Shown here: in pieces, positions 1-60,959 of the stretch
How positions within the stretch are numbered: the stretch's first letter is position 1
How the letters are laid out: every line of letters begins with the position of its first letter
NCBI GenBank assembly: GCA_973895155.1
Contig: OZ316897.1
Location: 2,681,416-2,745,415 of the forward strand
Reading direction: 5' to 3'
From: Marsupella aquatica
Lineage: Eukaryota; Plantae; Marchantiophyta
DNA: 64,000 nt
Notes under the pieces: generated by a model
Told to the model about the DNA's origin: nothing
Seen by the model: the letters and a program-made list of their open reading frames with translations, nothing else
The model's database searches: none
Translations under genes and position numbers: made by a program

Positions 1-1512
1 GAACTTTGACGATCACTGCCTCTAGGTTGATTGGTGCTTCTATTGCAGGCATAGGGAGATGCGGGCAACTTGAAGGGGCGGCCTCGTCGATCCACTCGGG
101 GTAAAATTCCGACCACTGCAAGTGCTTGGACGCCCGCTCGAAGGGGAACACATGGTATCTGGCCCACCCAACAGTGAACTGATGCCAGTTCTGCTCTTCC
201 TCCTCATCGATGTTCACCAGCCCGATCGTCAGACCGTTCCCGTGTTTTTCCAGTTGCAGGAGCCTGAGTAGAGAAGCGCCTTTAGGCAGGTCGCAGTATG
301 TGACAGTGTTTCCCGACCCCGGGAGCTTCAGTTCCTCTAGTGACGACGCCCCTGCCCTTTTGCAACCTGGGAAAACGTTGTGTAGCGCCCTGCATCCAGA
401 AGTCCAGAAATTGGGGTAAGATTTACCACCTTGTGATCCAAACGGCAAAGAAACTTTAGTTGAGGCAAGAAATTACAAGTTTTCACCCTGCCCCCTTAAT
501 AATTTCACAAAAATTGTAATTGACAACAGTCCAAGGATTCAGTAAGAACTGATGGTCGAGCCATACAGAACTGTAATAATCTAGAAAAAGTTAATCGCAC
601 AGAATCGAGAAAGTTTCAGAGGTCCTAGCTTGCTGGTGATATTAGGTGAGCTTGTCCCGAGATAATATAAAGAGTGACCGACAAGTCGACCTGCGCGCTC
701 CAGAATTGGAGATTTCAAGATGAATATTTGTTTAAATTTTTAGAGCTCAGACGAAGTGCGTTGAGCAGATCTCCGGAGTCGGCACAAGGATTAGAGAGCT
801 GAATATTGCTATAAATTGCGACGTCAGTCGACTGGTGATCGAGAATGAAATATATACCTTGATGAGCCACTGACATATGTAGTCTGAAGAGGTCGGTCCC
901 CGTCTGAGCCCCCGGCGTCGACGGGATGGGATTCTGGGTAAGTGAGAGACAACACTGCAATGGCACACACCAGGCCAAGAAGCACGACTATCTTCTTGGG
1001 GGTCTTCGATTTTTCATACTTGTCCTCGTCACCATCGACCAGCTGGGAGTGTTCATCTGTTTGCCCCTTAGTGTAAAAGTCCTTCGCCACTTTCTTCGGT
1101 TGCAAACGCTCAAAACTGCTGAGCAGTCCTCGTCCAAGTTCTTCAGCATCTAGCTCATCCCTGTAAAGTAAACAAAAGGCGTTAAATCGCTATACTCGTT
1201 AGACCACGTCGACAGGATTCGTCCTTCTAGTACTGTCTCGTTTGTTACAAATGAAAACTCCACTAGAATTGCATATTGGTGTTATACGCGACGCGGGACT
1301 TCAGCACTTAGACAAGGCGTAGGACTTGTCCTATAACTGGAATTGAGCTAGGTTTCCTCCAAGGAGACCGTTAGTAACTTGGCATACTCGATTGTGTATT
1401 TTCGTTAGTGTGTTTGCAAGGAATTGCAGAAGTCAGTGAGTAAACTTATTTTTATTGCTTACACGAGAGATGATCCAGGCTGGCGAAATCGACCTCCCTT
1501 GCTAAGCTTCAT
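1..1512 (-). CDS. GT8 glycosyltransferase, GUX/PGSIP (xylan glucuronosyltransferase / glycogenin-like) family; 5' part, runs off the window start
   Basis: Manual splice model with matching phases: exon 1512-1463 (MKLSKGGRFRQPGSSLV), exon 1160-858 (type II TM segment IVVLLGLVCAIAVLSL), exon 389-1. The last exon encodes IGLVNID...LQWSEFYPEWIDE...CPHLP...LEAVIVKV, matching the GUX/PGSIP motif W..LYPEWIDEE...CP.LP...LD.I.VKLPC. Confidence 0.85.
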
Positions 1513-1889
1513 ATCGAATATAATTCCTCTGTATAGAAATCTCTTGAGTCAATCCTCTGGACCAATTTTTTTCGGACACCACGTCCTCTGGCCTACTTCT
1601 GCTATTAACACTGGTGGTAAGGCTCCTTCTCAAGCTCTGTTTCTAGAACTGGGGGTATGCTCAATACTGAGCTTAAACTTCTTCAACATCTGCCACTCGA
1701 GAAGCACTTCCTCGGGGAAAAACACTCCGGAAGATTGATGTAACCCATCTCGAAAACCAATGTGTCGATAGACTTCTCACCTGATTTCCCCAAAACTCTA
1801 ACTGACATGTATGAACTATGTCTTCAACCGCTAGGCCAAACACCATCGCTCTGAACCACAAGAAATGAAGTTCTGCTGACTGTCTCGGA

Positions 1890-2003
1890 TCATTCCAGAA
1901 GTTCCATATCATCAACCGCCTCTGCTATTATTGACATCGCGAGATATGCGTTAAATCCCAAGGCGCATGTAAGGACTGACAACACCCAGAGCTCGACAGC
2001 CAT
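1890..2003 (-). CDS. Micro-ORF 3 (37 aa, MAVELWVLSVLTCALGFNAYLAMSIIAEAVDDMELLE), putative uORF/microprotein
   Basis: ATG in aaataATGG context, TGA stop. Hydrophobic N-half with LWV and Cys, acidic C-terminus; more distant relative of micro-ORFs 1 and 2. Confidence 0.55.
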   Translation of the reverse strand: MAVELWVLSVLTCALGFNAYLAMSIIAEAVDDMELLE

Positions 2004-2204
2004 TATTTACCGCTTATGATACTTGAAGTGTTATCCTAAGTGCGCTTAGCTGATAGACTTCAGGAAAGCGACTGGTGAATCAATCCTATATGTCAGCTCA
2101 ATTCGGTCAAACATGCAGTCTAGAAGCTGCTAAGCTTGATCGCTGTCTGGAGCCGAATTCGTTGGTCCAGAATTGATTTCGACTCTTTCTTGTACTAGAC
2201 GTAC

Positions 2205-2321
2205 TTAGATGCATTGTTCTTCAGCCTCTGAGAACAAATCGTCAATGATTTCTTTCACCATTCCCAGAAGTAGCACACTCCCCACGCACTGAGTAAGGAT
2301 GACCCACACGGTGAACGGCAT
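2205..2321 (-). CDS. Micro-ORF 2 (38 aa, MPFTVWVILTQCVGSVLLLGMVKEIIDDLFSEAEEQCI), putative uORF/microprotein
   Basis: ATG in gaaaATGC context, TAA stop. Gapless 32-codon alignment to micro-ORF 1 with 15 identical residues. Confidence 0.7.
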   Translation of the reverse strand: MPFTVWVILTQCVGSVLLLGMVKEIIDDLFSEAEEQCI

Positions 2322-2495
2322 TTTCGGCACTCAAAATAAATCAGTGCCGATTTACGTATGGAAGCTCCGCTTGAAATATCAGTTGATCTCGTCACGAAGC
2401 GGAATCCAATGAATCTCTTCGAACAGCTCCTTGCTACCCGGTGTCACCGTTGATTTGAGAACCTGCACTTTCCGCTGAAGTCTGTGAGCTGGCTT

Positions 2496-2636
2496 CTAGA
2501 CGGACTTACAGTTGACAACAAGAGCTGGTTCCTCCTCGTCGGGAAGCACGGCATCGATCAAGTCTTTCAGCATCCCCAACACCATCACATTCCCGAAGCA
2601 CTGCAAACAGAATACCCACAAAGTCTCAATTGCCAT
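2496..2636 (-). CDS. Micro-ORF 1 (46 aa, MAIETLWVFCLQCFGNVMVLGMLKDLIDAVLPDEEEPALVVNCKSV), putative uORF/microprotein
   Basis: ATG in gattATGG context, TAG stop. Paralogous to micro-ORF 2; its N-terminus (MAIETLWV) resembles micro-ORF 3 (MAVELWV). Confidence 0.7.
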   Translation of the reverse strand: MAIETLWVFCLQCFGNVMVLGMLKDLIDAVLPDEEEPALVVNCKSV

Positions 2637-2827
2637 AATCTCTTCTATCACGAATGACTCTCTTCCTCTCTGGAGAATCGAAGTTGTCCGAGAGTCCTAG
2701 CTTTCATCAGTACTCAAGCGATCAGAAAGCTCGAGAACGTCTTTGGCAACGATCATTCACAAATCGCCAACCAAAAGTCTTCAGCCTGGTGGACTTCCTC
2801 TCGTGCCGACTGGTGGACTTGGCTCGG

Positions 2828-2835
2828 TTTATATG
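2828..2835 (-). promoter_or_regulatory. Candidate TATA box (CATATAAA) for the micro-ORF/GUX transcript
   Basis: TATAAA on the minus strand about 190 nt upstream of micro-ORF 1. Confidence 0.45.
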
Positions 2836-3274
2836 TCCTCCCCACCTCCCCACCTCTCCCCCTCACACCAAAGTACCTGAGCCTGTACTTTCCTCCCATC
2901 GATTCGGGCAGCTTATCCATCAGTCCAATTCACTCAATTCAGTGATGCCACAGAACTGTAGATCGAGTAGAGTGATCCGGAATTGGGAGCTGAGCGATTG
3001 AACTGAGCGGTGCGTTGGTCAGCTAATCTCTGGGATTAGCTGAATCAAACACATGCCTCACCGCCTGCCTTCTCTTAGTTTGCTACGGCCCAGCCGAACC
3101 TCTGGCGGCGCTCACCAAATCACCGAAGTTAACTACCTCCCGGGCTGCACGCATGCATTCATGAACGAGTGAATTGATGAATGATCGTCCTCGAGATTCA
3201 ATCATTCTGTTGAAGAGTCCCGACGCGATTTCTGCTTCACCGACATTCTGTTCCTCCGCAGTGTTTCGGTAAGC

Positions 3275-4085
3275 GGTTTGGGAGGATTCCGCTCTTGCGA
3301 CCGACGCATGGAACCCTTCCAGTTCACTTGCGAACTTGGATTTGGTGGGATCCCTTTGTAATCACTCCCTAGTGTAGTCCAGTTTTTTAAATTTGTTTTT
3401 ACAGAGGTTTATTAACCTGTCCCCAAAACAAAATTCATTATCAACTTGTCTTCCATTCTCTATATAGATTCTCATGAATAGAACCATGGTTACAAAGCTT
3501 TTGTTCTCATTGGTTAGGGCTCCCTGTTGCCATGAGGGGAGTTGCCATCTCCGCCGATTAACTCGCACCCCTCCTGCTCCCCCCTCTCTGCTGGCCGGAC
3601 GGTTTGGGAGGATTGGGCTCTTGCGACAGGCACATGGAACCCTTCCAGTCTACTGCTGAACATGGTTGGACGGCTTTGTGATCACTCAGTAATGTAGTCC
3701 AGTTTTAAAATTTCTTTCTACAACTTTTTATTAACCTCTCCCAAACTACCCAAAGTTCCTAACCGCGCACCCCAACCCCCCCCCCCCCCAAGCAAAACTA
3801 ATTATCAACTTGTCTCCCACCCATTTTCTATATGGGGTATCATGAACTGAACCATGGTTACAAAACCTTTGTGCTCATTGGTTAGGGCTTCCCTTTGCCA
3901 TGTGGCTAGGTGCCATTTCTGTGGATTCAGCCCTCCCTGGCCCCCCTTGCTGGTGGCTTGACATTTTGGGAGGATTCAGGGGCTCTTGCAACCAGCGCTT
4001 GGAACCCTCCAGTCCACTCACAAACTTGGTTGGACTACTTTGTGATCACTCAGTAATGTAGTCAAGTTTTTAAATTTTGTTTTCC
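3275..4085. repeat. Diverged tandem repeat, about 2.5 copies of a 325-365 bp unit
   Basis: Blocks GGGAGGATT...GCTCTTGC...TGGAACCCT(T)CCAGT and ATCACTC..TA(G/A)TGTAGTC..GTTTT recur near 3280, 3606 and 3968; AACCATGGTTACAAA recurs near 3482 and 3850. Confidence 0.85.
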
Positions 4086-4616: not shown

Positions 4617-6067
4617 TCAAGATCAGAGACTCTTCTCAAATCTCTGGAGTTGATATCTATCCTTGCACATTTGGCAACCTTCGGGATTCTTGGGTTAAGG
4701 GTCTTCTTATCAAGTTCACTTATTGAGGCAAGTTGAAATGTGTTCATCATTCTCGTGACTCGAGTAGCACTCCACGTCTGGTCTTTGTCGGATTGTTGCT
4801 TGGTGACTAACCTTACTAAGATCTCACAGTTTTGCAAGATTTTGGGTTTGAGGATGAGTTTAATTTCTTGTCATTCCGTACTTCATGGATGAGTCGTGAT
4901 ATCTTGTCATTCAGTACATTATGTAATTCTTTTGGGACGAGTGCACTTGGATCCCTTGGGTATGACTACTCACAAGCTGTGAGCGGCGCATTTGTTTGCA
5001 TATCCAAGTGCTCACAAGGTATAGTTTGGAGGTCTTGTTTGGCCCTAATGTGGCGAAGTTGACTTCAACCGAAAGTGCACTTTTTATTGATCTTCCTGCA
5101 AGTATGGTAAGAATCTGCCTATTTTCTTTGACAGTCAACCATGCCCAGTCTTCGGAGTTTTTTATGCTTATAGAAATGCTCTCTCAAGCTGATGTGTGTG
5201 CACTGCGGTGGGAATGCAGCTTGGTTCATTCTTTATGGTCTGGGTTTAGTTGGCTTTGTCTTCAAGAAGGACATTGCAATGTTTTCAGAACACTTGGCTG
5301 TTGGGCTCTCTGCTGGTCTCATGGGGAGCATCACAACTTACGCTGTCCATGATGCAATGAAATTTGGCAATCATGGTGACTGGCAGTTGACTTATTTGGT
5401 CTACTAATTGGTGCGTATCTCTGCTCTATTGTCAGTTTCGTTCCAAGATAACTCGAAATGGAGCATGAGGATGCTGTTGCAAGCCTGAGGAAGTCATTTC
5501 CAGGTCCCGAAGAGTACTACGAATAATTAGCAATTGATGCTAACAAATCAAGTAGAATCTGGAACACAGTTTGGTTTAATTCGAGCTATATATGATGATA
5601 TGTACGTTTTACACTTGCTGAAAGTGGTGGTCTGGCATCTGACAGGAATATACTTGGCCCAAATGTCTCTCGTGGTGGGAGAGGACACGGCACGCCTTTT
5701 GCACAGAACAATTCAATTTATAAAGGATGAGAGGAGTTGCAAAGGGTTAGAAAAGTGGCATGTGTCTGCACCTAACAATCTCAATCGTTGAAATTTGAGC
5801 CTCGCCCTGTTCATATTTCTCGGTGGTGGCTTATGGGTAGCATCAGTGGTTCTGACACTGATCGATACAAACTCAACATCGAGAACAACTCTTTGGCTAG
5901 CTTGTTGGCTTGCTCCACCAGGAGTATGGTTTCGATGGTATTTTGCTCATTTGAATGGACATGGCATCGGACCAAAGCACCACCAGAAGTGGTTTCCTGT
6001 GGGAACATTCTTGGTTAACGTGACAGCTTCTTCCCTTAAAGCTGGTCTGACATCTGTCGATTCTGCT
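4617..6067 (+). pseudogene. FEX: Fluoride exporter (FEX / CrcB-Fluc family) pseudogene
   Basis: Exon remnants ISILAHLATFGILG, VLTRYSLEVLFGP...DLPASM, LAVGLSAGLMGSITTY and LWLACWLAPPGVWFRWYFAHLNG...WFPVGTFLVNV. Disabled by frameshifts in the 5220-5410 exon, an in-frame TGA at 5789-5791 and non-canonical splice sites; no last exon found. Confidence 0.85.
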
Positions 6068-7499
6068 GTAAGTTCTTTCTGTCTCGCTCTGAGCTGTGTG
6101 CTCGCTCTCTGTGTTCAAAGCCAATGTGTACCAATGAGTTTAGTATCTTTTGGAATACTATTGCACGTTGTGTCTGTAGTAACCTTTGCAGATATTAGTT
6201 GCTCACGGTATTGAAATGCTCAAATGAAGCTGGGGACGGAAGGTCTGATACCGAAATAGGGTGCTCCCATAAGGAAAAATGAAACAAACATATCTCTCCC
6301 TCAACAAATTTATGACATTTCCCTGACGTATGTTTCGTCAAACGTAGGTCGGGAAGTATACTTCCACAGTGGTTGTGGGCGGTAGTAACCTAAGAGACGC
6401 TCGGGGGCTTGAGCACTGTTTTGACCTTCGTTACCGAGATACAGCAGATAGTGCACGAGGGGAGCAATCGGTGGCGATCGTATGCTTACCCAATCATCTC
6501 ATTGGCCGTTTCCCTCGTTATTGGAATTCTAATATACGGAGTCCCGGTGTGGTCAAAGGCTGTGTGAATGTGGGCATGTGCAAATCGGGCGTTGCCTGGA
6601 GTCTTTGAATTGGAACTCAGAAAGTGCCTACCTCCTCTTCTTCACAAGTTTAACAATTTGCAAAGATTTTATAAATGTTCTCTTGCATTTAGCCTGTTGG
6701 TAAGTCTTTTGAACACTGGACAAGTCATATTTGATTTGCTAAAAAAAGTGCTTAATAGGACTCATCAAATGAATCTAAAGGTCAGATTAGGTTTATAGAT
6801 CGATAACACATTTTCTATAGCATATCTTGGGCTGGGGGCACTACACAAAATTGCATATAATTAGTTGTCCTAAAAGAGCCCCTGAAGGAAGTGTGACTGA
6901 TTTGTGGGAGTAAGTGTTATTTTGATCCCTTTGGAATCATTAGTGTATTATTAGAACCGGGTGTGTAGAAATGCATGTTATTTTTAATCTTGTCAAGCTA
7001 ATAATTATAATCAAAAATTAAAATACACTAAAGGCATTCAAAAATCTAAATTTGGTAAAAGCATTGTTTTTAATATTCAGCTAGGTATTTAAAATTATAT
7101 AATATAGGGCACAAGTTTTTTTTAATTAAGTTTATTGGTTTTTTTCACATATTTTAGGTGTTTGCACTAAGTCATTCCCCATGGATTTGATATTTTGCTC
7201 AAAATTTAAATGCACACAAAGGCCCAAAAATAAATTTATGATGAATAAAAAATGGGGAAAAATCAAATACTCTTTAGGCCAACACTAAAAAATTGATTAT
7301 TGGCTCTCAAGTCAAGTGAGGTCATTCAAATGGCTGTAGGGTGCTTTAGGTACAAGAGTTGTTAAGTATTTTCTTTGCATACCTCAAGACCAAGAAGTTT
7401 TTGCTCAAAAATCACTAGTAAGTGCATGAATGAAACACATAATGTGTCATAAATTGATATGTATCACAATAAGTTCTGCACGCATAAAAATATTAATCT

Positions 7500-20066: not shown

Positions 20067-22598
20067 ATGGACCAACAGCAGCAGCAAAAGCAGAATCAGC
20101 AGCAGGTTGTGGAAATGGGAGGGTTTTCCCTAGAACTCGCGTCTCAAGCATTGGCAGCTACGGGCGCCAAATCCACTCTCAAAGCCACGGAATGGATTCT
20201 GGAACAGCGCCGCGCCGCAGATTTGTCCCACAAGCCCAACAACAACAACAATGCCATCGTCGGCAAGGGCGGCAGGGCGAGCCAGTCAAGGCTGGACCTT
20301 TTTTTCCAGAGTGGGAACGCCAACACTTCGACCGCCTTGCAGCTGAGATCTGTCCCGGAAGATGACCGGGGTTGTTCTGCCGGCGGTGGTGGTGGTCTTG
20401 ATGAAAGTGACAGCAATACGTCCGATACTCGTGAGGATGACGTTTCCGAAAATGCCCAATCAGGTGGATCGGGAGAAGGAGCAGACACAGCCATAGTAGG
20501 AGGTTTTGATAGTGGCGGAGGAGCACAGCTGGGATGGTGGCCTGTAAATTCTGTTCGAGGAGAGCGAGAGGGTGTAGGATCATCAGGCCATGGAGCAGGG
20601 GGAGGAGTGAGGGCCTCAGACAAAACTCCACGATTCGGTCTGGCCAAAGGTGGCTCAATGACACCTGTGACGAGGGAGGAGGAACCAGCACCAGAAGTTG
20701 TTGGTGGTGGCGCTTCTAGTCAGGTCAAGCGTGCCTCGTTGGGTAAGAAAGCTAATCATGTTGGTGGTGGTGGAAGTGGCTCTGCTCCCAAACGACTAAA
20801 ACAATACGGAGCTGAAGCTCATGAATCAGCTCTAGCTCCGATTTTCTCCAGTCCTCAGACCTTTCGGCTCAGTAGCAAGCAGAAGGTTGCGAATGTAGCA
20901 GCGGAAAATAAGCCGGGGAATAGGAAAAGCCTGGCCCCCTTAGCAGAGAGAATGAGACCAGTCACTGTAGATGACATCGTGGGGCAGGATTCTCCACGGC
21001 AAATGTTGAGGAATTTACTGGACAATGCAATAGTGCATTCCATGATTTTATATGGACCACCTGGAACTGGGAAGACCTCTTTGGCCAGAGCAATTGCCCG
21101 CTCGTTGCCGGGGTGTCACTTTGTTGGTCTGTCTGCTGTCCACAGCGGGACTAAGGAGGTGAGAGTGGTGCTGGAGGAGGCCAAGAAGCAGAGGAAGCGA
21201 CACGGGCGAAGGACGCTCCTCTTCCTGGACGAGGTGCACAGATTCAACAAAACGCAGCAGGATCTGTTTCTCGCCTCTGTGGAAGATGGTGACATTATTT
21301 TCGTAGGAGCCACGACTGAGAATCCGTCGTTCGAAATCAATGCTGCTCTCCTCTCCAGGTGTCCAGTGCTCACTCTTTATAAACTGGAACCCGAGCATTT
21401 GAGGAAGTTGTTGGAAAGGGCAATTGCAGATCGGGAGAAAGGAGTGCTTGCCTCACTTCCAGATTGTGCATCTGTTACTGGAGCTGGAGATTGTATCATT
21501 AGAGTCGAGGAGGATGCGTTGGTCTTCCTGGCCGGTGCAGCTGACGGAGATGCCAGAGTTGCCCTGAATGCCATTGAGGTGGCCGCCGCTGTCGCCTATT
21601 CTGAGGCTAAAGTCAGCAGAACTCAAAGTAAGGAAGTGATTGGCACCGTTCTCACTTGTCGAGCCGGAGCTCTGGAGAAGATAGGATCGTCGGGTAACAT
21701 AACCGGACTGGGGAAGTCTGTATATGTGACTGAAAGAGGTGGCAACGGATTTGGATCCAAACGTTTGGAGGCTTTGATTGAGAATGCTAGGGATAGCTCC
21801 CCCGCGAATGAGGATTATTCCAAGCCGTTCAAGAGGTTTGTGGGTGGGAAAGAAATTACCCCTTTGCACAGGTTTGAGAGGGAGGTGGTGTCTCTGAGCG
21901 CTGGAGATGGGAGCAAAGACGCCATGTCTCTCAGGGGCGTGGAGCCGACAGAGCCAATTGAAAGCAAATTGAGCAATCCAGACGCAATAGTGCCAGATGG
22001 AGCTGATTTGGATGTGAGTGGAGGACCTGGACTGGTGGTGAGAGTGACCCTAACTCATGCTCGCGAAGCCTTCCAAAGGTCTCACATTCTATACGACAAG
22101 ACTGGGGAGGAACATTACAACATCATAAGTGCTTTACACAAGTCCATGAGGGGGGCGGATGCAAACGCCGCTATATACTGGTTAGCTAGAATGCTGGAAG
22201 GGGGTGAAGGGCCTTTATATGTGGCACGGAGACTTATTAGATTTGCGAGTGAGGATGTTGGTTTGGCTGATCCCCACGCCATGGAGGTGGCTGTGGCATG
22301 CTATCAAGCCTGCCACTTTTTGGGGATGCCCGAGTGTAATGTCAACCTGGCCCAGTGCGTCGTGTATCTTGCCGACGCTCCGAAGTCAGTGGTGGTGTAT
22401 CAGGCCATCGAGGCTGCGCAAAAGCTAGTCAGGGAGACGCAGCAGAATGAGCCCGTTCCTTTTCATCTTCGCAATGCTCCTACAAGGCTCATGAAGGACA
22501 TGGGCTATGGACGGGGATATATATATCCTCCGGGTCATCCTGGGCGAGTCGAGCAAGAGTACATGCCTCCATCACTACAGGGACACAAGTTTCTGTAA
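20067..22598 (+). CDS. WRNIP1: WRNIP1/MgsA(RarA)-family AAA+ ATPase with N-terminal UBA domain, intronless
   Basis: 843-aa ORF: UBA-like N-terminus, PLAERMRP, Walker A GPPGTGKTS, Walker B LLFLDEVHRFNK, GATTENPSF, and the MgsA C-terminal HYNIISALHKSMRG and ASEDVGLADP. Confidence 0.97.
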   Translation: MDQQQQQKQNQQQVVEMGGFSLELASQALAATGAKSTLKATEWILEQRRAADLSHKPNNNNNAIVGKGGRASQSRLDLFFQSGNANTSTALQLRSVPEDDRGCSAGGGGGLDESDSNTSDTREDDVSENAQSGGSGEGADTAIVGGFDSGGGAQLGWWPVNSVRGEREGVGSSGHGAGGGVRASDKTPRFGLAKGGSMTPVTREEEPAPEVVGGGASSQVKRASLGKKANHVGGGGSGSAPKRLKQYGAEAHESALAPIFSSPQTFRLSSKQKVANVAAENKPGNRKSLAPLAERMRPVTVDDIVGQDSPRQMLRNLLDNAIVHSMILYGPPGTGKTSLARAIARSLPGCHFVGLSAVHSGTKEVRVVLEEAKKQRKRHGRRTLLFLDEVHRFNKTQQDLFLASVEDGDIIFVGATTENPSFEINAALLSRCPVLTLYKLEPEHLRKLLERAIADREKGVLASLPDCASVTGAGDCIIRVEEDALVFLAGAADGDARVALNAIEVAAAVAYSEAKVSRTQSKEVIGTVLTCRAGALEKIGSSGNITGLGKSVYVTERGGNGFGSKRLEALIENARDSSPANEDYSKPFKRFVGGKEITPLHRFEREVVSLSAGDGSKDAMSLRGVEPTEPIESKLSNPDAIVPDGADLDVSGGPGLVVRVTLTHAREAFQRSHILYDKTGEEHYNIISALHKSMRGADANAAIYWLARMLEGGEGPLYVARRLIRFASEDVGLADPHAMEVAVACYQACHFLGMPECNVNLAQCVVYLADAPKSVVVYQAIEAAQKLVRETQQNEPVPFHLRNAPTRLMKDMGYGRGYIYPPGHPGRVEQEYMPPSLQGHKFL

Positions 22599-26425: not shown

Positions 26426-27508
26426 TCATATCTCGCCATAGGCCCTTTTAGATATTAGTGAATATTCACCGCCCATAAGCTCAAGCACTTGTCTCCAAAG
26501 TGGTCTTTTCAACCTGATGCACTGGTCGGTCACAATGTCTCTAGAACCCGATGCAAGATACCATACACCATGGGCTACTTCCCGCTCCAGTTGGCCCGGA
26601 CGCCAGCCACAAAACCCGAGAAACCATCGATAGTCATTAGGCACAGTCTCACAACCTTTCACACTCTTATTGACTGCATCAGGTCCCCCAAGATAAACTC
26701 CGGATATCACTTCTTTCGAGTCCTGCAACCCAGGGACACCATGGATGACTTGAATTAAGTTTGTGCCGACGTCACCGCCCATGTACAGCGGCGATTCTGT
26801 GAATTCAGGCTTGAACTTTTCGAATCCTGGGACCTGCCCCAATGCGTAACTGGTAGGTCTGTTGAGAATAAATCCTGCACTCCCATCCTCGTCATGCTCG
26901 AAGAGAAAGATTACTGCTTGGTTGAAGTACGTCTGCCGGCTGCCAAACGCGGTGGGGTGAGCAATGAGAAGGCATCCCTTCTCCGGTTCCACCAACGCAT
27001 GTGCCCAGCGTCGTGGGTCTTCGTCCTTCTTGGGATCTACAGAATTGTTAGCACCTTTCACCAGCCTTGCCCTAAACCACCTCCAATCCGTGGTTTGCAG
27101 CCTGAAACTGGCCTCGAAGTCCAGATCCTCATCGTCCTTGCCACCCCCATTGGTGCCACTGGGGCCCGGCTCACTACTCCCTGGCTCGTTGCTGTCCGGT
27201 TCTCTGCTTCCCGCAGAGATCTGCTGCACTCTGATCCCTCTTCTTCCTAATCCTCTGCTACTCCTTCCTCGTCTAAGCTCTGCTACGTTTACTCCACCCA
27301 CCCTTTCGAGGCGGGAGTTGGAGTTGCTGGGACAACCCAACTTTCCTCCTCCTGCTGCTGCTCTGAGGTCGTCCGATGTAAAACCCCTTCTGCGTAATTG
27401 GGACCGAAACGATGACGCACAGCAGGAAGTGGAAGATGGAGAAGGACACGGGGCAGGTGAAGACGCCAAAGCTGCTGCTGGAATTGATCCCAGCGTAATG
27501 GTCGCCAT
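26426..27508 (-). CDS. DUF179 (YqgE/AlgH-family) protein with a probable plastid transit peptide, intronless
   Basis: 360-aa ORF with a Ser/Ala/Arg-rich N-terminus; DWRWFRARLV, EKGCLLIA, GFILNRP, LYMGGDV and FLGFCGWRPGQLEREV motifs. Confidence 0.92.
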   Translation of the reverse strand: MATITLGSIPAAALASSPAPCPSPSSTSCCASSFRSQLRRRGFTSDDLRAAAGGGKLGCPSNSNSRLERVGGVNVAELRRGRSSRGLGRRGIRVQQISAGSREPDSNEPGSSEPGPSGTNGGGKDDEDLDFEASFRLQTTDWRWFRARLVKGANNSVDPKKDEDPRRWAHALVEPEKGCLLIAHPTAFGSRQTYFNQAVIFLFEHDEDGSAGFILNRPTSYALGQVPGFEKFKPEFTESPLYMGGDVGTNLIQVIHGVPGLQDSKEVISGVYLGGPDAVNKSVKGCETVPNDYRWFLGFCGWRPGQLEREVAHGVWYLASGSRDIVTDQCIRLKRPLWRQVLELMGGEYSLISKRAYGEI

Positions 27509-32179: not shown

Positions 32180-33695
32180 CTATTGAGTACTTTGTGAGCT
32201 GTTGAACTCTGCAACAATTTCCTCTCCAACATTCTCTGCGGGCTCCCAGGTCTCTTGACCATCTGACCACCTCACAAAATATTGTACCTTCCCGTCAGTC
32301 TCCCTCTTGTCAAGAACTTGCTCTACAATTCCATACTCTAGCCCATCCTCATAATCCTTGATTAGATCCTCACCAATGTCCGTTGCAGGAACCCAGCTAT
32401 TCTCAGAATCATCGCTCCACTTCACCAAATACTCAAGAACTTCACCTTCACCCATCCTTTTGTCGAGAACCTGCTCCACCTCCACAGTTTCATACATAAC
32501 TTCATCTAAGGCCTTCACGACTTGATCCAGTGCAAGTCTTCGAGCAAATTGTAACGGGTTGGCCTTCGGTGTCTTGTCCAGGAGCTCCTGAGCTAACGAT
32601 AAAGCAGATCTTCCCTTTCCATCTTCCAGATCAGGGTCAGCTCCAAGCTCCACCAGTGCTTTTACCGTGTTTACGTGCACGTACCCAGATGCGATATGCA
32701 GGGCTGTAAACCCATCCCTATCCTGCACACGAAGTTAAACCCATATTCTTAGGAACTCATGGTTCGTTGCAGGAAGTTGCAAATCAAGTTCTTTAATTTC
32801 AAACCCCAATTTAAAATAAGATGTGCACTACTTCAGATCCTCTACTGATGGAGTACAGAGTAAGGAACAGCCACACTCCTATCCCTTCAACTGAAACAGT
32901 AAGCTATGACCTCAATCCAATGTCACGTCAGAGGAGCACAGCTCAATAATTACTGATCTCCAATGGAACATCACAACGTTATGCACAAGACTTGCTCTAT
33001 ATACATTTTCCATAAATAGAGGAGGGACAGAGAGGGTTTCACATTACCTGCCAATGTACGTCGGCTCCATACTCAATAAGACGCCGAACACACTTTTCAG
33101 ATCCCAATCCTGCCGCGAAGAAAAGCCCCGTTCTCTCATTCTCATCTATAGCGTTGACGTCTCGTTGCAGCTCTTCATCGTCCAATAGCTCCGTCATCTT
33201 CTCGATGTCTGCTTTACGCGCAGCCTGCCACCATGGCTTCTCATATTCGGCCACAACGTCCCTGGCGATGTTGTCCGCCGGCTCCCAGCTGTCTGGATGA
33301 TCATCTTTCCATAAAATCAAGTACTGGGTCTTCCGATCCACTACTCTGCTGGCCAAGATTAAATCCACCTCCCCGAAGGCCTCCGCTGTTTCTTCCTCTT
33401 GCCCAGCTCCCCAGCTAGACTCAGCCTCTTCTTCCTCCAGTTGTACATCTACAAATGTATTTTTCTCAGCTTGGGCTGCACAAGATGCACTTTCAGCAGC
33501 AGTAGAGAAGGGAGACATGCGACCCACTGTTGTACTCGTAATGCTCCTCAGAGCCCTTGAATTTTGGCCCTGGACACGTCTGATTGCCAACGAAGAGGAA
33601 GCACACGAAGCAGGGTATCGAACAGTGGCACTGGGTGTCACCGATACATAGGTGAGAGGTAGACAGGACCCAGCAGCTAGAGCCCTGACCTCCAT
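32180..33695 (-). CDS. CAO: Chloroplast signal recognition particle 43 kDa subunit (cpSRP43/CAO), two exons 33695-33048 and 32722-32180
   Basis: Transit peptide, chromodomain ([20 protein letters not shown]), ankyrin repeats ([27 protein letters not shown]) and two C-terminal chromodomains; phase-0 GT-AG intron. Confidence 0.96.
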
Positions 33696-34371
33696 AGCTC
33701 CTAACTCCTGCAAGCGCCCGCAACTGAGCTATGTCAAAATTCAAGCATTCCCAAGCAAAGGGCTCTCCCTAACAAAAGTGTTGTCCGTCCGTCCGACCGC
33801 AGGGAGAAATCGCACGGTACAGGGGAAGAAATCGGCAGGGATTCTTAGTTTTTGTCAGTTGCTTGTTAGACCATGATAATCGGGAGTCCCGATTGCCGCA
33901 GAGAGTTTCAAGTGAACTACAGCAGCTACAATCGCAAAGATTTTACTTCGTCGAATTCAAAGGTCACTGAATGCTCGAAATCCCCGTGCACAGACCGAGT
34001 GTTCAAAAAGCTAAGATTTCCGTGCCGACTTTCGACAAAATGCATCAACCTAATGTCGTACCGAACGAAACCGAGACAGAATGTGATCAGATCGAGCTAA
34101 GATTTCTATGCGGGAGCTTCAGCAAATTCTTCGACATCGCTGCGAACGACTTGAACGAGACAGAGTATTACCTAGTAGAGCTCAGATACCTGCACGAGCT
34201 TCAACCTATCAACGCTTCGAACTACAGTACTTGCTTTGAATTGAACCGAGACAGAGCTCGGATTGCTGCCCGGAAAATGCTTCCCTCTACTGTAATTGCA
34301 AACGACAAGAGAAATCCAACAAGGCTCCAAAAGACAGGTAGAGAAAGCTCAGATTCTCACCCCTAGCTTAG

Positions 34372-44739: not shown

Positions 44740-45447
44740 ATGACAACTTCTTCCTCCGGCAACCCTCTCGGCCCCTGGGTTCAGCCGTCTGCAGCCGAGC
44801 TTTCCCAGCAAATATCCGTAACATTGCCAGGCCGCCTCGTCACCCTGGTGCCAGGCCATACGTCTCAGTTGGACGATCTGTTCGCAGTGCTCGGCGGAGA
44901 AGAAAACGCAGTGATTTGGGACTACATTCCCTTCGGCCCGTTCCAGAGCCGCGAGGAGCTCCACGCCTTCTTCGCCGCTAATTGGCAGAATCCAGACGTG
45001 GCTTACTTCACAATCATCGATAATACGGTGCAGAAAGCTGTTGGCTCTCTCGCACTCCTCAACATCAACCGTGACAATCGCTCAGTAGAAGTCGGGAATG
45101 TGTTGTTCTCTAAGCAGCTCCAACGTACATTTGCCGGAACAGAAGTCATGTATCTCCTGGCCTGCCATGTCTTTGACACTCTTGGCTACAGGCGTTACGA
45201 GTGGAAATGTAACAACTTGAATGAGCCTTCCAAACGTGCAGCGCTGCGCTTGGGGTTCAAGTTTGAGGGTGTTTTCAGGCAGCATATGATCCTCAAGGGA
45301 AGGAATAGAGACACAGCGTGGTTTTCTATTTTAGACGGGGAATGGCCAACCGTGAAGTCAGGGTTTGAGAGATGGCTGGATGCAGAGAATTTTGATCAGG
45401 AGGGACGACAGCGGAAAAGTCTTGCGGCACTGCGTGATGCTGTCTAG
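44740..45447 (+). CDS. GNAT N-acetyltransferase, RimJ/RimL (Acetyltransf_3) type, intronless, fungal/bacterial-like
   Basis: 235-aa ORF with WDYIPFGPF, SVEVGNVLFS, LGYRRYEWKCNNLNEPSKRAALRLGFKFEGVFRQHMILKGRNRDTAWFSILDGEWP and WLDAENFD..GRQRKSL. Confidence 0.93.
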   Translation: MTTSSSGNPLGPWVQPSAAELSQQISVTLPGRLVTLVPGHTSQLDDLFAVLGGEENAVIWDYIPFGPFQSREELHAFFAANWQNPDVAYFTIIDNTVQKAVGSLALLNINRDNRSVEVGNVLFSKQLQRTFAGTEVMYLLACHVFDTLGYRRYEWKCNNLNEPSKRAALRLGFKFEGVFRQHMILKGRNRDTAWFSILDGEWPTVKSGFERWLDAENFDQEGRQRKSLAALRDAV

Positions 45448-56930: not shown

Positions 56931-59825
56931 CAAACAGTCAATCACAACATTTGAACCCCAGACCTATGAGTGGTTACTCAAGTGACCCAAGACCTATGAC
57001 TCATTACTCAAGTGAGCTAACAAGCAACCTCTATGGGCATGTGTACTTATTTATTTATTATATCGGAACACCAAACAACAAAAGGGTGCATAGGGGGAGA
57101 CACAATCCCAAAGGCATTAGATGCTTTCACAAGGAGAAAATAACGGGAAACCCCACAAAGATCAATGAGCCAGAAAGCCCCGGAAGTTGAAGTCACAAAA
57201 AAAAAATTGTCTAGAGACCCTAAAACTAACAGCCTCACCCTACAATTAGTTCGTGGACCCCCTGGTTACATTTTTTAGGCCTTGTTTGAGCTTGCATTTT
57301 GAGAGGCTAATATGGTCCATAATGCTCTGCTAGCACACATTAAAACACTTAAGATCTATGAGATATTTTCACTAATTTTAGAACATTAATTAATAAACCC
57401 AAGGCACAATTTTGTTTATGTTAGTTGATTTGGGCATTGGATGACACTATATTTTACCACTAAATTGCCCTAGGTACTCAATTTGAGTTGAGAAGACTAC
57501 TTTCTCCAAATCAATTGAGAAATCTGCTTTTCTAAGCAAGGAACCCTAAGCTTTCTAGTAGCTAAGTCCTCTTTGTAGAATATTTGTCACCTGATTTGTT
57601 TATGTACTTTCAAATTATTGGAAATTCTGGAGATTTCACTGAAGTCTGAATTTGGCAAGTTTTGAATTAGAGGTGAATAGCCTCATGACCTTGATGCAAC
57701 TATTCACCAAATGGAGAAGGGCAGTGCTTAAAAAAAAATTAAAAAAAGGGCAGCACTTAAGCTTTCAAATGAGAGAAGTCTGATTAAGAAGAGAAGCTGG
57801 TAGTCATGTTGTGTTGGACAAATAGGTTAGATTTTACAGCTTGTATTGTTTAGATTAGATTAGATTAGATTAGATTTTCTCACGAAATCAATTGTGGACC
57901 CATTCAGCCATGCCTGAGCAGTTGACATTTTTCTAACTGCCACATGAATACTTTGCCTTGCAGGCCAAAGTCGACAGCATAAATATCACAAGTAGTTGTC
58001 AAAATCAGGCTTTTCGCTACATGCAACCAAATTCTCAAGCTACAAGAGTCAATAGTCAATCCGTGGCAAGTCCATTTGAAACCAGATCAATGTCTGATCA
58101 AATGAATTGAATCAATTCATTGAATTCAAGTCCCGACCATAGTTGGCAGTTTGTCTAAATTGCAAAAGGCTGAAAATCTTACTCCATGTGCCAATTATCT
58201 TTTAACAAGGAAATTATCAAGTTAGTTATTAGTCATTGTTTATTATTTGAAAAATACTTTTTAAATCTTTGAATTTAATTTTTAAAATTGGATACGTAAC
58301 TAAAACGGTTACAAAGTGACAGTTTTACCGGTCTTGCTCTTTGCATTTCTAAATTTTTACATTTCTTTTTACGGTATGGCGTCCCAAAATTTACACCCAA
58401 ATTGACGCAAACACGAATGAAAACTGTAAGTTGATTCATAAAACTGATGAGTCTTGTTTGTTGCGGTTGTTGTTGACGTGGCATACTCTGGTATCAGGAA
58501 TTTTGGTACGAACCTCTAATGGGGTCCACAAAGAGTATTGTACCATCTACATTGTTTACTACCATTAGTGTAACAGTCTACAGTGTATGAGACATTCATG
58601 CATCTACACTGTTTACTGCCATGAGTGTAACTCTAACTAATTCTGGTTGAGAAATTTCTGGGCTCGTCTCATGATCTAGATGTTTGACAAAATGCCCGGG
58701 TGGACCAGTGCAACCCAGATAGACTGCAGAAAAACCTTTTTTGTACTCAGAGGGCTTCCTTGTCTTTGTAAATAATTCCATACTTTCCTGGACTAGAGTA
58801 ACTTGGTCATCCCGTTTGCAAGGTTTATGGGAGTCCCAAGGTACATGGAATGGTCTAAAGTTTTGTCCACTCAGTCTCCTGGAATGCATTGATTGCATTT
58901 CTCACATAAGCCCCCTCTGGTTAGTCTCATGCCTGGAAGCCTAGATTTTAGGCTGAGAAAGGCCCACTCTCATGCCTGGAAGCCACTCAATTTGGTATGG
59001 GAAAACTCACTTTGTGTCCTTTCCTTCTTGTAAAATGCCCCTGATGGGAGACATTGGGCAGGGCACCTTGTTTGATTGCAATGACTGTGCTTTAAGGGAG
59101 GTGCATTTCTTGTTCATCGATAAATAAATTATTTTGTACAAGTTGTTACATAGATGTGAGTGTAAGATAATGGTAAAACCTTTGTCTTGAAAGGAGGAGT
59201 TATTTGGTTTCATACTTGTCAGATCACTGGAGTATTTCAAGTTTTCCAAAATGGGTCTCCTAGCCAGACAAACAGTTGAATAAACATTCAAGAAAGTTAA
59301 AAGGGGTTTACTGGTATTTCCAAATGGCCCAAGAAACGAAGAAATCACCCTGATAAAATCAATTGACAATTAAATAACCACCAACATAATCCACCATCAT
59401 AAGCAACTGGTCTTGTCGCAAGTGCACCATAAGACTATTGTGAACGATATTTCTCCTTTTTTCTCTGCTCGCGGGTTTGACTAGGAATGTAGAGATCCTC
59501 GTCCAAATTCGAGGAAATTCGATTTCAGCGTGGTGTCATCGGATGTGTCTCGATGCGACGTACTTATTATCCGAGCACCTGTGTCGAAAGGAGAAGAGTT
59601 GCGGTACGAGAAGCAAGGATTTCCTGCTTGAGAAGAGTTGCGGTACAAGAAGAACGGATTTCCTGCTTGATCCACAAGGGCGGAGCTGAAAAGAGAATTC
59701 TATATGAAGAAGTTGTTCTCGTACTACAGAGGTTCTTTTGCTCAGGACGAATTGAAGACGAAGAAGGTGGTTTCGGTCGGTGCAACTCAAGCACTCGTTG
59801 ATAAGCGTGTTTGATTGAGCAAGCT

Positions 59826-60959
59826 ATGATGGCGTCGCTTAGCGTCTCCCCTGGCTGTCATATTTGGAATTATCGAGTGAGCTCTCATGACCGGTCGCTC
59901 GGATTGCCACTGAGGGGCGGAGAGAGGACTGGAGGACAAGGAAGCAGGCTGGAAGTAGGAAGAGGAGTGTTCTGCTGTACGCCGCCATGCCAGGATTATT
60001 GCCAGGACAGGGAAGCGATCAACCAGTCCAGTGCAGGAGGATCAATATCTAGTTTAGGGGATTCTCTTCTTGCGGTGGACAAGAAACTCTATGAACAAAG
60101 TGGACGAAGAGGTCTACAGCCAGCAAATACTCATGATGTACAGTTTTTGCCAGGATTGGAAGTGGACACTCCGATAAGAAAGAATGCTGCACCGCTCCTG
60201 TACAAGCCACACATGGATCATTTGTGGATGACTCTGACCAAGTACGCTCCCGATTTCAAGACCCTGAACCTGGAACCCGACTTCATGCGGCAAACAAGTA
60301 AGGTCGGGGCAAAAACGTCAAGAGTATTCAACTGGCTTTTATCTGCAAGTAGGCTTCGCCGAATTCGTATGACATACTTTGATGGAGGCTCTGCACTTCA
60401 AGCTTTTAATAGCCTCCTTTATCCAGATTTGAGGTATGATGTACCTATGCTGGGAATCGACTTGCTTTCATTTGGGGCCAACAAGATTCTCTGTGTCGTT
60501 GATTTCACACCTCTGAATCAAGATCCTGTCTACTTGGACAAGTATACTAGTCAATTGGCTCCATTTAGAGCCAAGATCGCAGAACATTGTGGGAGGATGA
60601 CAACGAAATTCTATGATGAAAACCAATTCTTCTCAAAGCAGTTGATATTTTATCGGTCTGAGTTGGGGGCTAAAGATCCGATACTAGAGGTACCCAATGG
60701 ACTTTTCTTTTCGACTTATGTTGAATACATAGACGAATACTTACAGGTTCTCCAAGCTGCTGAGCCAAACGAAGATCCCCTGCGAATGGCATATGTTGCT
60801 TCGAGACAATTTGCCTATAACAAACACTCAGAGGAGCGGGATCCTGCAATTAAAATATTTAACAAACACTTTGGGGAGGAGTGGAGTGAACGGTTCACAA
60901 GGGAATTCCTGTTTCCTCAGGACATAATTGACAAACGAGATGATGTAGCTATGAACTGA
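59826..60959 (+). CDS. PUBS: Ferredoxin-dependent bilin reductase, PebA lineage (phycourobilin synthase PUBS-like), plastid-targeted, intronless
   Basis: RRIRMTYFDGG.ALQAFNSLLYP..YDVPMLGIDLLSFG...VVDFTPL...YDENQFFS...ERDPA..IF.KHFGEEWSERF..EFLF matches PebA; N-terminal extension of about 120 aa. Confidence 0.9.
   Translation: MMASLSVSPGCHIWNYRVSSHDRSLGLPLRGGERTGGQGSRLEVGRGVFCCTPPCQDYCQDREAINQSSAGGSISSLGDSLLAVDKKLYEQSGRRGLQPANTHDVQFLPGLEVDTPIRKNAAPLLYKPHMDHLWMTLTKYAPDFKTLNLEPDFMRQTSKVGAKTSRVFNWLLSASRLRRIRMTYFDGGSALQAFNSLLYPDLRYDVPMLGIDLLSFGANKILCVVDFTPLNQDPVYLDKYTSQLAPFRAKIAEHCGRMTTKFYDENQFFSKQLIFYRSELGAKDPILEVPNGLFFSTYVEYIDEYLQVLQAAEPNEDPLRMAYVASRQFAYNKHSEERDPAIKIFNKHFGEEWSERFTREFLFPQDIIDKRDDVAMN

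Follow-up and report, generated by a model that had tools for sequence, protein, structure and literature searches.

The window analysed here, a 64-kb stretch of DNA from the liverwort Marsupella aquatica, holds within its first 3 kb a series of short open reading frames followed head-to-tail by the start of a glycosyltransferase gene, all of them on the minus strand. The series is preceded by a TATA-box candidate (cATATAAA at 2828..2835, with TATAAA at 2833-2828) that is the sole TATA[AT]A on this strand between 3300 and 1400, no second one being present there, and immediately upstream of it TRF found a G-rich tandem repeat of 3.5 units of 8 nt each (TGGGGAGG in minus-strand reading, 2837..2864). 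Then come a 19-codon ORF with a moderate start context (2697..2756), a second 19-codon ORF having its ATG at 2707, and three micro-ORFs, here termed mORF1 (46 aa, 2496..2636, net charge -5), mORF2 (38 aa, 2205..2321, net charge -5) and mORF3 (37 aa, 1890..2003, net charge -6). These are followed by a 57-codon ORF (1673..1846) with a strong start context and no relation to the mORFs, and the distance from the mORF3 stop to the ATG of the glycosyltransferase gene is 378 nt. Each feature listed in the original prediction, including the TATA candidate, the 19-aa ORF and the unrelated 57-aa ORF, was found where it had been placed on the minus strand; the leader of about 1.3 kb proposed there was also arithmetically correct, but the second 19-codon ORF and the total of 21 upstream ATGs ahead of the main start, several in strong context, had gone unmentioned. 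The stretch 1513-3270 had no other copy in the 64-kb window, and a transposon origin of the mORF region was rejected.

The downstream gene had been predicted to encode a GUX/PGSIP glycosyltransferase starting at 1512, and both parts of this assignment proved sound, with stem homology to GUX-type GT8 proteins and with GT8 genes of Marchantia and Riccia agreeing in their exon 1, in their stem, and in where and in which phase their first intron falls. Our gene model comprises exons 1-3, searched separately and representing the N-terminal part of the protein, with the catalytic GT8 domain located beyond the window. Exon 1 (MKLSKGGRFRQPGSSLV, 1463..1512) ends with a phase-2 donor before gtaagc and has an in-frame stop 13 codons upstream, intron 1 spans 1161..1462, exon 2 (858..1160) encodes an acidic/basic cytosolic tail and a transmembrane segment (KKIVVLLGLVCAIAVLSLTY), and exon 3 (1..389, partial, running off the window) encodes a stem region with a YPEWIDE motif. 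Using the 129 aa of exon 3 in an exhaustive representative search, we found 63 proteins matched at E<=1e-3, with 45% identity to the Marchantia xylan alpha-glucuronosyltransferase; all five full-length matches among the seven proteins scanned carried PF01501, and names of matches included 'xylan alpha-glucuronosyltransferase' (Marchantia) and 'UDP-glucuronate:xylan alpha-glucuronosyltransferase 3' (Physcomitrium). A word search with exon 3 gave no match in its length range. The sequence ...KSKTPKKIVVLLGLVCAIAVLSLTYPES encoded by exon 2 aligned to the membrane-spanning region of the proteins from Marchantia and Riccia, as fits a type II topology. The phase-2 intron follows ...PGSSLV here and ...PGLFV, ...PGLLL, ...PGLSL or ...PGHFA in the Riccia and Marchantia relatives, where the first-intron donors are GTAAGT or GTGAGT. 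The liverwort genes have in common an N-terminal RxPG...DELxxxE junction, an intron 1 of the same position and phase, a type II transmembrane segment and the YPEWIDE motif, at stem identities of 42-45% (Marchantia P0077, Riccia P0002) or 38-39% (Riccia P0075, P0076).

The three micro-ORFs had been claimed to be paralogous, and our comparisons bore this out. Between mORF1 and mORF2 the identity was 43% over 35 aa, with a protein z-score of 15.7 against shuffled sequences and a tblastn E of ~1e-8 within the window. The third copy is diverged, with weak protein similarity to mORF1 and mORF2 (p = 0.02 and 0.002, respectively) and with no DNA similarity to either found, but it has the same architecture of a MAxExWV start, a hydrophobic helix and an acidic tail. 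When all 267 sORFs of the 64-kb window that start with ATG and have 30-60 codons were filtered for a hydrophobic N-terminal 19-mer and a net charge of -3 or lower, only three passed, and these were mORF1-3. They lie on one strand, each having its own start and stop, at spacings of 315 and 318 bp (period ~316 bp), which is the tandem arrangement of polycistronic smORF genes of the pri/tal or sarcolamban type. AlphaFold2 predicted a single helix at residues 2-30 of mORF1 (pLDDT 80-87) and a disordered acidic tail, and the part conserved among the paralogues is residues 5-29, whereas the tails (EEEPALVVNCKSV, AEEQCI and MELLE) and the stop positions differ. Taken at the level of predicted products, these comparisons show three tandem paralogous micro-protein ORFs, each putatively encoding a hydrophobic helix of the membrane-spanning type and, after it, a short and strongly acidic tail. 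Separately, a 21-nt likeness of GUX exon 2 to mORF1 (repeat D12) is in a different frame and was taken as chance.

The manner in which mORF1 and mORF2 have diverged shows, as far as a paralogue comparison can, that they have been kept by purifying selection on the peptide while the surrounding DNA diverged to random. Nucleotide identity between them was 61-69% in the ORF core versus 12-38% in the flanks when aligned in register, with no residual similarity between the spacers. Their 41 base differences were distributed 15/7/19 over the three codon positions, the second thus being the most conserved, and pN was 0.32 as compared to a pS of 0.66. When these differences were placed randomly, stop codons arose in 76% of the trials and the BLOSUM score of the products was 31±15, compared to the observed 91 (P < 5e-5), a test made on this one paralogue pair with synonymous sites saturated, while for mORF3 the architecture is the sole evidence. 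Gene conversion as the source of the similarity was ruled out, the synonymous sites being saturated and the flanks random. Antisense coding was likewise rejected, as the frame directly complementary to mORF2 is interrupted by two stops, given by the sense codons CTA and TCA, and a non-coding RNA element was discarded when Rfam returned SNORD123 alone, far below threshold (E = 0.91).

These results bear directly on the possibility that the trio is non-functional, i.e. a decayed local duplication with frames and similarity persisting by chance, or a similarity reflecting some non-coding element. Such a reading would agree with the barely detectable sequence similarity of mORF3 and with the outcome of our searches for relatives of the peptides. 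Pfam (E<=1) gave no match for mORF1 or mORF2 and only a chance one to Mpv17 for mORF3 (E = 0.12), so that none of the three matched the family profile of a known small membrane subunit such as OST4 or Pmp3/RCI2; a PDB profile search gave no match below E = 0.9, the ESM Atlas no usable match, and a word search, with mORF1 as the sole query and being silent on longer or shorter relatives, no homologue. Exact-sequence look-ups of mORF1, mORF2 and mORF3 found no gene on record with any of these products, and those of two intronless proteins of the window likewise gave no record. Against it stand the restriction of the mORF1/mORF2 similarity to the ORF, the coding type of the substitutions with the random-placement result given above, the architecture common to just those three sORFs, the lack of an Rfam family match and the closed antisense frame of mORF2, and we consider it highly improbable that the trio is without function.

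The ends of mORF1 and mORF2 have a further feature in common, in the form of a 13-nt block, TAAGTNCGTCTAG, that occurs only twice in the 64 kb. At the 3' end of mORF1 it reads TAAGTCCGTCTAG (2496..2508) with a donor-like ct/GTAAGT at 2509, and at the 3' end of mORF2 it reads TAAGTACGTCTAG (2195..2207) with a donor-like aa/GTACGT at 2204. As the two ORFs read the block in different frames, its conservation is at the nucleotide level, which could suggest that the mORFs are short, cassette or alternative exons of a spliced 5' leader or of a non-coding RNA, with the two donors named above joining an acceptor just ahead of the GUX ATG so as to give isoforms having one, two or three mORFs. A strong donor, ag/GTGAGA, at 1780, an acceptor, ttctccag/AG, at 2670 before mORF1, and an acceptor-like tttctatacag/AG at ~1531 would be compatible with this. 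However, these are consensus matches alone, of a kind commonly met by chance, the donor GTs of mORF1 and mORF2 are at non-homologous positions, a comparable donor is lacking in mORF3, an acceptor by the same filter was found ahead of neither mORF2 nor mORF3, and the block may be the least-diverged relic of the end of an ancestral ORF (P = 0.007 in a local shuffle), making a role of the mORFs as cassette exons decidedly improbable. That the mORFs might serve GUX as alternative first exons in frame was rejected, as the donor of mORF1 is in phase 1 and would upon joining to exon 2 give a stop after two codons, while in mORF2 and mORF3 stops precede any donor.

With regards to how the three ORFs could be expressed, the distribution of ATGs between them is informative. 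The inter-mORF spacers hold one ATG in 375 nt, none of it between the mORF1 stop and the mORF2 ATG, versus 6.5 expected (shuffling test, P = 0.008). As few were present in just 2.2% of the 375-nt stretches of the window itself, a modest signal (p ~0.01-0.02) based on 375 nt. Such ATG-poor spacers are consistent with serial translation from a single RNA. Because the 316-bp unit is too short for a promoter and a terminator, and because the spacers are AUG-depleted, the three mORFs most likely reside on one RNA, which we infer would start near the TATA box at 2833. Translation could then proceed from mORF1 to mORF3 by termination, resumed scanning and re-initiation. The spacer from mORF3 to GUX gave a different result, with four ATGs in 377 nt, including that of the 57-codon ORF, a number matched by 23% of the window stretches and thus no significant depletion. 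When all non-mORF parts of the region were pooled there were seven ATGs versus ~17.5 expected, matched by 3.1% of the window stretches.

Whether this RNA also includes GUX was the central issue of the original prediction, in which the peptides either gate GUX translation in cis or are co-expressed membrane partners in trans. In the cis model the dominant GUX mRNA would start at ~2800 and mORF1-3 would be uORFs of its 1.3-kb leader, gating GUX either through the nascent peptide, as in CPuORF-like stalling, or by plain ribosome capture. The mORFs are on the same strand as GUX, and the 378 nt from the mORF3 stop to the GUX ATG leave little room for a 3' end and a promoter. That interval, in which no AATAAA and no second TATA is present, would have to accommodate the promoter and 5' UTR of GUX along with a 3' end, a layout that favours read-through into GUX. 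Long leaders would not be exceptional in liverworts, the median 5' UTR in Marchantia being 454 bp according to a passage in PMC11873679 that cites Bowman 2017, and the GUX paralogues of Riccia are 65-77% identical for 700 nt or more ahead of the ATG. The pooled ATG-poverty of the region also agrees with a leader function, as does the fact that CPuORFs likewise show selection at the peptide level. On the other hand, a leader with 21 upstream ATGs, among them that of the strong-context 57-codon ORF after mORF3, and with a last spacer lacking significant ATG depletion, speaks against such gating.

The synteny check that the original prediction had proposed also failed to support it. When the GUX loci of five bryophyte regions, from Marchantia, Riccia (three loci) and Physcomitrium, were searched with 10 kb on either side by tblastn and an HMM of the three peptides, no related sORFs were found (best E = 0.14), and tblastx of the upstream regions of GUX in relatives gave no mORF-like match, these relatives being distant (GUX stem identity 38-45%). 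The liverwort relatives thus have GUX genes without the upstream micro-ORF trio, unlike the Marsupella aquatica locus, and by this comparison of sequences the trio is a lineage-specific addition, and no conserved part of GUX genes. CPuORFs resemble the trio in being short same-strand ORFs upstream of a main ORF with conservation at the peptide level, but their defining trait is conservation between orthologues, with those of class I conserving the C-terminus and the stop position (PMC4330380, PMC9305500). Neither trait was found here, with no peptide conserved upstream of the orthologous ORFs at the five bryophyte GUX loci and with an N-terminal hydrophobic helix conserved among the paralogues while C-termini and stop positions vary; the C-terminal region was critical in four of five sequence-dependent uORFs tested (PMC4330380). 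Our literature search found no paper linking uORFs with GUX1 and xylan, and none of the described CPuORF types is a series of paralogous hydrophobic uORFs. The link between the mORFs and GUX is positional only, and the loci of the relatives, the 21 upstream ATGs, the undepleted mORF3-GUX spacer and the variable C-termini lean mildly against a GUX-specific module, with uORF control of GUX being in our judgement rather unlikely.

A further reading would be a four-cistron mRNA encoding the three micro-proteins and, after them, GUX, where translation of the mORFs would both set the ribosome flow to GUX and supply it with membrane partners. Although improbable, this would amount to a plant nuclear 'operon' joining a glycosyltransferase to its own micro-subunits. 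ORFs for small proteins that share a single mRNA with a larger ORF after them are found in the polycistronic nuclear genes of green algae, with TOM22 and OST4 tested as ORF 1 (PMC11291117). Those genes use leaky scanning, with extra upstream or internal AUGs reducing expression of ORF 2, and have a weak start context of the upstream ORF and no AUG inside it or between the ORFs (PMC11291117). The present locus is not of that design, since mORF1 has a strong start context (gagattATGG, with A at -3 and G at +4) and four internal ATGs; four more lie between mORF3 and GUX. It also differs in that Pfam finds neither OST4 nor any other family in the mORFs.

The reading that we prefer, and to which we give about an even chance, is that mORF1-3 form a tri-cistronic smORF unit with trans-acting membrane peptides, and that the connection with GUX is one of position. 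The unit would then be of the same type as pri/tal or sarcolamban, and for the peptides a role in trans is the most likely one, as small subunits or regulators embedded in a membrane, with the acidic tail probably on the cytosolic side. The smORF RNA could either stop ahead of a GUX promoter, or extend in a read-through or distal-TSS isoform, in which case the smORFs and the further upstream AUGs would be expected to strongly repress GUX translation. Should the RNA reach GUX, this would be a new way in which small membrane peptides are coupled to a cell-wall glycosyltransferase, and should it stop short, the trio would still represent a new, testable micro-protein family missed by annotation pipelines.

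Functional micro-proteins are, to our knowledge, seldom recognised in plant genomes, with bryophyte cases having evidence of selection being scarce, and we know of hardly any documentation in land plants of serial multi-cistron translation from nuclear RNA, for which insects offer well-known cases (pri, sarcolamban). The mORF1/mORF2 pair provides internal evidence of peptide-level selection without the need for a second genome, and the tandem AUG-poor layout suggests that several cistrons may be translated serially from one nuclear RNA. The pri peptides are 11-32 aa in length, soluble, and have an LDPTGXY motif in common, in contrast to the mORF peptides, which are hydrophobic and acidic and three in number. 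The likeness to pri/tal/mlpt, listed in PMC12744755 as insect polycistronic smORF genes (Kondo 2007, Savard 2006), is in the repeated paralogous tandem smORFs, each having its own start and stop on a presumed single mRNA. Drosophila sarcolamban differs from the trio in having no sequence similarity to it and in acting on SERCA, with the mORFs having strongly acidic tails, belonging to a plant lineage and putatively lying on a single RNA. The sarcolamban ORFs are presumably paralogous to each other, as the mORFs are. Two smORFs for transmembrane-type peptides on one transcript once thought to be non-coding, as sarcolamban is described in a passage of bioRxiv 10.1101/2020.07.19.211243 citing Magny et al. 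2013, nonetheless come close to the present locus, with tandem smORFs on one strand, peptides of ~30-45 aa, a single hydrophobic helix, and neither locus having been called a protein gene.

The features underlying the original prediction were all recovered in place on the minus strand. In their direction of reading, these were a TATAAA candidate (2833-2828, the sole TATA[AT]A within 3300-1400), a 19-codon ORF (2756-2697), the micro-ORFs mORF1 (46 aa, 2636-2496), mORF2 (38 aa, 2321-2205) and mORF3 (37 aa, 2003-1890), a 57-codon ORF with a strong start context (1846-1673) and, at 1512, the ATG of a GUX/PGSIP-type GT8 glycosyltransferase gene (GUX), having a gtaagc donor 50 nt further on. A second 19-codon ORF, absent from that prediction, starts on the same strand with an ATG at 2707, and a hypothetical transcript from about 2800 would carry 21 ATGs before 1512. 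Immediately upstream of the TATA candidate, at 2837-2864, an 8-nt unit is repeated 3.5 times (CCTCCCCA on the plus strand, TGGGGAGG on the minus strand), which may be a G-rich promoter element.

The mORF1 and mORF2 peptides align ungapped over 35 residues with 43% identity (z = 15.7 versus shuffles), and their DNA, taken in register, is 61-69% identical in the ORF core versus 12-38% in the flanks, with no detectable leftover similarity in the spacers. Differences at codon positions 1, 2 and 3 numbered 15, 7 and 19, with pN at 0.32 and pS at 0.66, the synonymous sites being near saturation. Random placement of the 41 differences gave a BLOSUM score of 31±15 versus the observed 91, which none of 20,000 trials reached, and stop codons arose in 76% of the trials. 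The directly complementary antisense frame of mORF2 is closed. From the ORF-confined similarity, substitution pattern, random-placement test and closed antisense frame together, we infer that the ORF was duplicated long ago and that purifying selection has since acted on the peptide. With that signature, gene conversion was rejected, as was a non-coding element, the single Rfam match being far below threshold.

For mORF3, no DNA similarity to mORF1 or mORF2 was found, and its protein similarity to them is weak (p = 0.02 and 0.002, respectively). However, the 64-kb window contains 267 ATG-started sORFs of 30-60 codons, counting both strands, and exactly three of them pair an N-terminal 19-mer Kyte-Doolittle value of at least 1.5 with a net charge at or below -3, namely mORF1-3, which share a strand and are spaced at 315 and 318 bp. 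As this hydrophobic and acidic architecture is restricted to the three, we accept mORF3 as a diverged third copy; the micro-ORFs are real and paralogous, as had been proposed. The peptides have net charges of -5, -5 and -6 and share the N-terminal helix and a juxtamembrane K-D/E-L/I-I-D, while their tails and stop positions differ; AlphaFold2, using the three-sequence alignment, predicted a single helix at residues 2-30 (pLDDT 80-87) followed by a disordered tail. No family was found for them in Pfam, PDB, the ESM Atlas or a word search (the last with mORF1), and exact look-ups of all three sequences found no record. We regard the three tandem micro-protein ORFs as a genuine family that is lineage-specific and has no detectable relatives.

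Because the 316-bp unit is too small for a promoter, ORF and terminator, mORF1-3, if expressed, almost certainly share one RNA. The two inter-mORF spacers hold one ATG in 375 nt versus about 6.5 expected (P = 0.008 by shuffling; as few in 2.2% of 375-nt stretches of the window), the spacer from mORF1 to mORF2 having none at all, which would fit resumed scanning and re-initiation from ORF to ORF. Green-algal polycistrons rely on leaky scanning (PMC11291117), a design that does not apply here, since the start context of mORF1 is strong (A at -3, G at +4) and four further ATGs lie inside this ORF. Our best reading, to which we give an even chance, is that the three smORFs form a tri-cistronic unit, translated by serial re-initiation, and that their peptides would act in trans in a membrane; in organisation, the insect sarcolamban and pri loci, as summarised in the literature, come closest. 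The window contains just two copies of a 13-nt block, TAAGTNCGTCTAG, one at the 3' end of mORF1 (2496-2508) and one at that of mORF2 (2195-2207); the conservation is at the nucleotide level, since the copies are read in different frames. Each has a donor-like GT (ct|GTAAGT at 2509, aa|GTACGT at 2204), and acceptor-like sites lie at 2670, before mORF1, and some 20 nt ahead of the ATG of GUX; a spliced leader or cassette exons could be read from these sites, with low probability.

The identity of the downstream gene and its ATG were borne out, with the GUX exons searched one by one rather than as a joined spliced model. Exon 3 (2-388, minus strand; 129 aa, including YPEWIDE) matched 63 proteins at E<=1e-3 in an exhaustive representative search, and PF01501, the GT8 domain, was present in all five full-length proteins among seven matches scanned. 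The nearest relatives are from liverworts (Marchantia P0077, 45%; Riccia P0002, 42%), and source names include 'xylan alpha-glucuronosyltransferase' (Marchantia polymorpha) and 'UDP-glucuronate:xylan alpha-glucuronosyltransferase 3' (Physcomitrium). The start at 1512 is well supported, because the exon 1/exon 2 junction GGRFRQPGSSLV|DELDAEE agrees with Riccia GRRARPPGLFV|DELEGDE, intron 1 has the position and phase common to four annotated Marchantia/Riccia genes, and the frame is closed by a stop 13 codons upstream. The catalytic domain is beyond the window edge. Another exon 3 match, P0001 (2793 aa), has 25 separate stretches matching residues 22-54 of the translation and is a repeat protein made of a GUX-stem-like segment.

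Evidence on a coupling of the trio to GUX is indirect. A shared RNA is favored by the common strand, by the mere 378 nt from the mORF3 stop to the GUX ATG, by the absence of AATAAA and of a second TATA between them, and by the long leaders of liverworts (median 454 bp for Marchantia; PMC11873679). It is also favored by Riccia, where the 700 nt or more preceding the ATG are 65-77% identical among GUX paralogues/orthologues (L001 9222-10000, L004 9334-10000, L005 8046-10000). This identity points to leaders or promoters that are long and conserved; a short uORF starting MARVCS is among the shared sequence. Against a GUX-specific module, ATGs are not depleted between mORF3 and GUX (4 in 377 nt, equalled by 23% of stretches), and this spacer contains the strong-context 57-codon ORF. 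The synteny check also went against it: tblastn, HMM and tblastx found no related sORF within ±10 kb of five bryophyte GUX genes (Marchantia, two Riccia fluitans loci, R. sorocarpa, Physcomitrium), relatives distant enough to limit power. Neither the C-termini nor the stop positions are conserved, which sets the trio apart from class I stalling CPuORFs; the C-terminal region was critical in four of five sequence-dependent uORFs tested (PMC4330380). Among the papers searched, none connects uORFs with GUX1 and xylan. We regard mORF1-3 as uORFs in the GUX leader as rather unlikely, and a full operon, with the peptides as GUX partners, as very unlikely.

In Marchantia (L003 6271-7171), a tandem repeat whose units span about 230-330 bp and reach 91% identity lies 3-4 kb before the GUX start. 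In the interval separating the TATA candidate from the next gene of our window, a 320-365-bp unit is repeated in tandem about 2.5 times (3274-4077); its copies are 67-83% identical, went undetected by TRF and have no further counterpart in the window. Long open frames identified a CrcB (fluoride exporter)-like exon (5795-6214, plus), divergent from the micro-ORF unit, an 843-aa MgsA/WRNIP1-type AAA+ ATPase with a UBA domain (20067-22598, plus), a DUF179/AlgH-like protein (26426-27508, minus), a chromo+ankyrin exon (33039-33713, minus), a GNAT acetyltransferase (44740-45447, plus) and a ferredoxin-dependent bilin reductase (59811-60959, plus).
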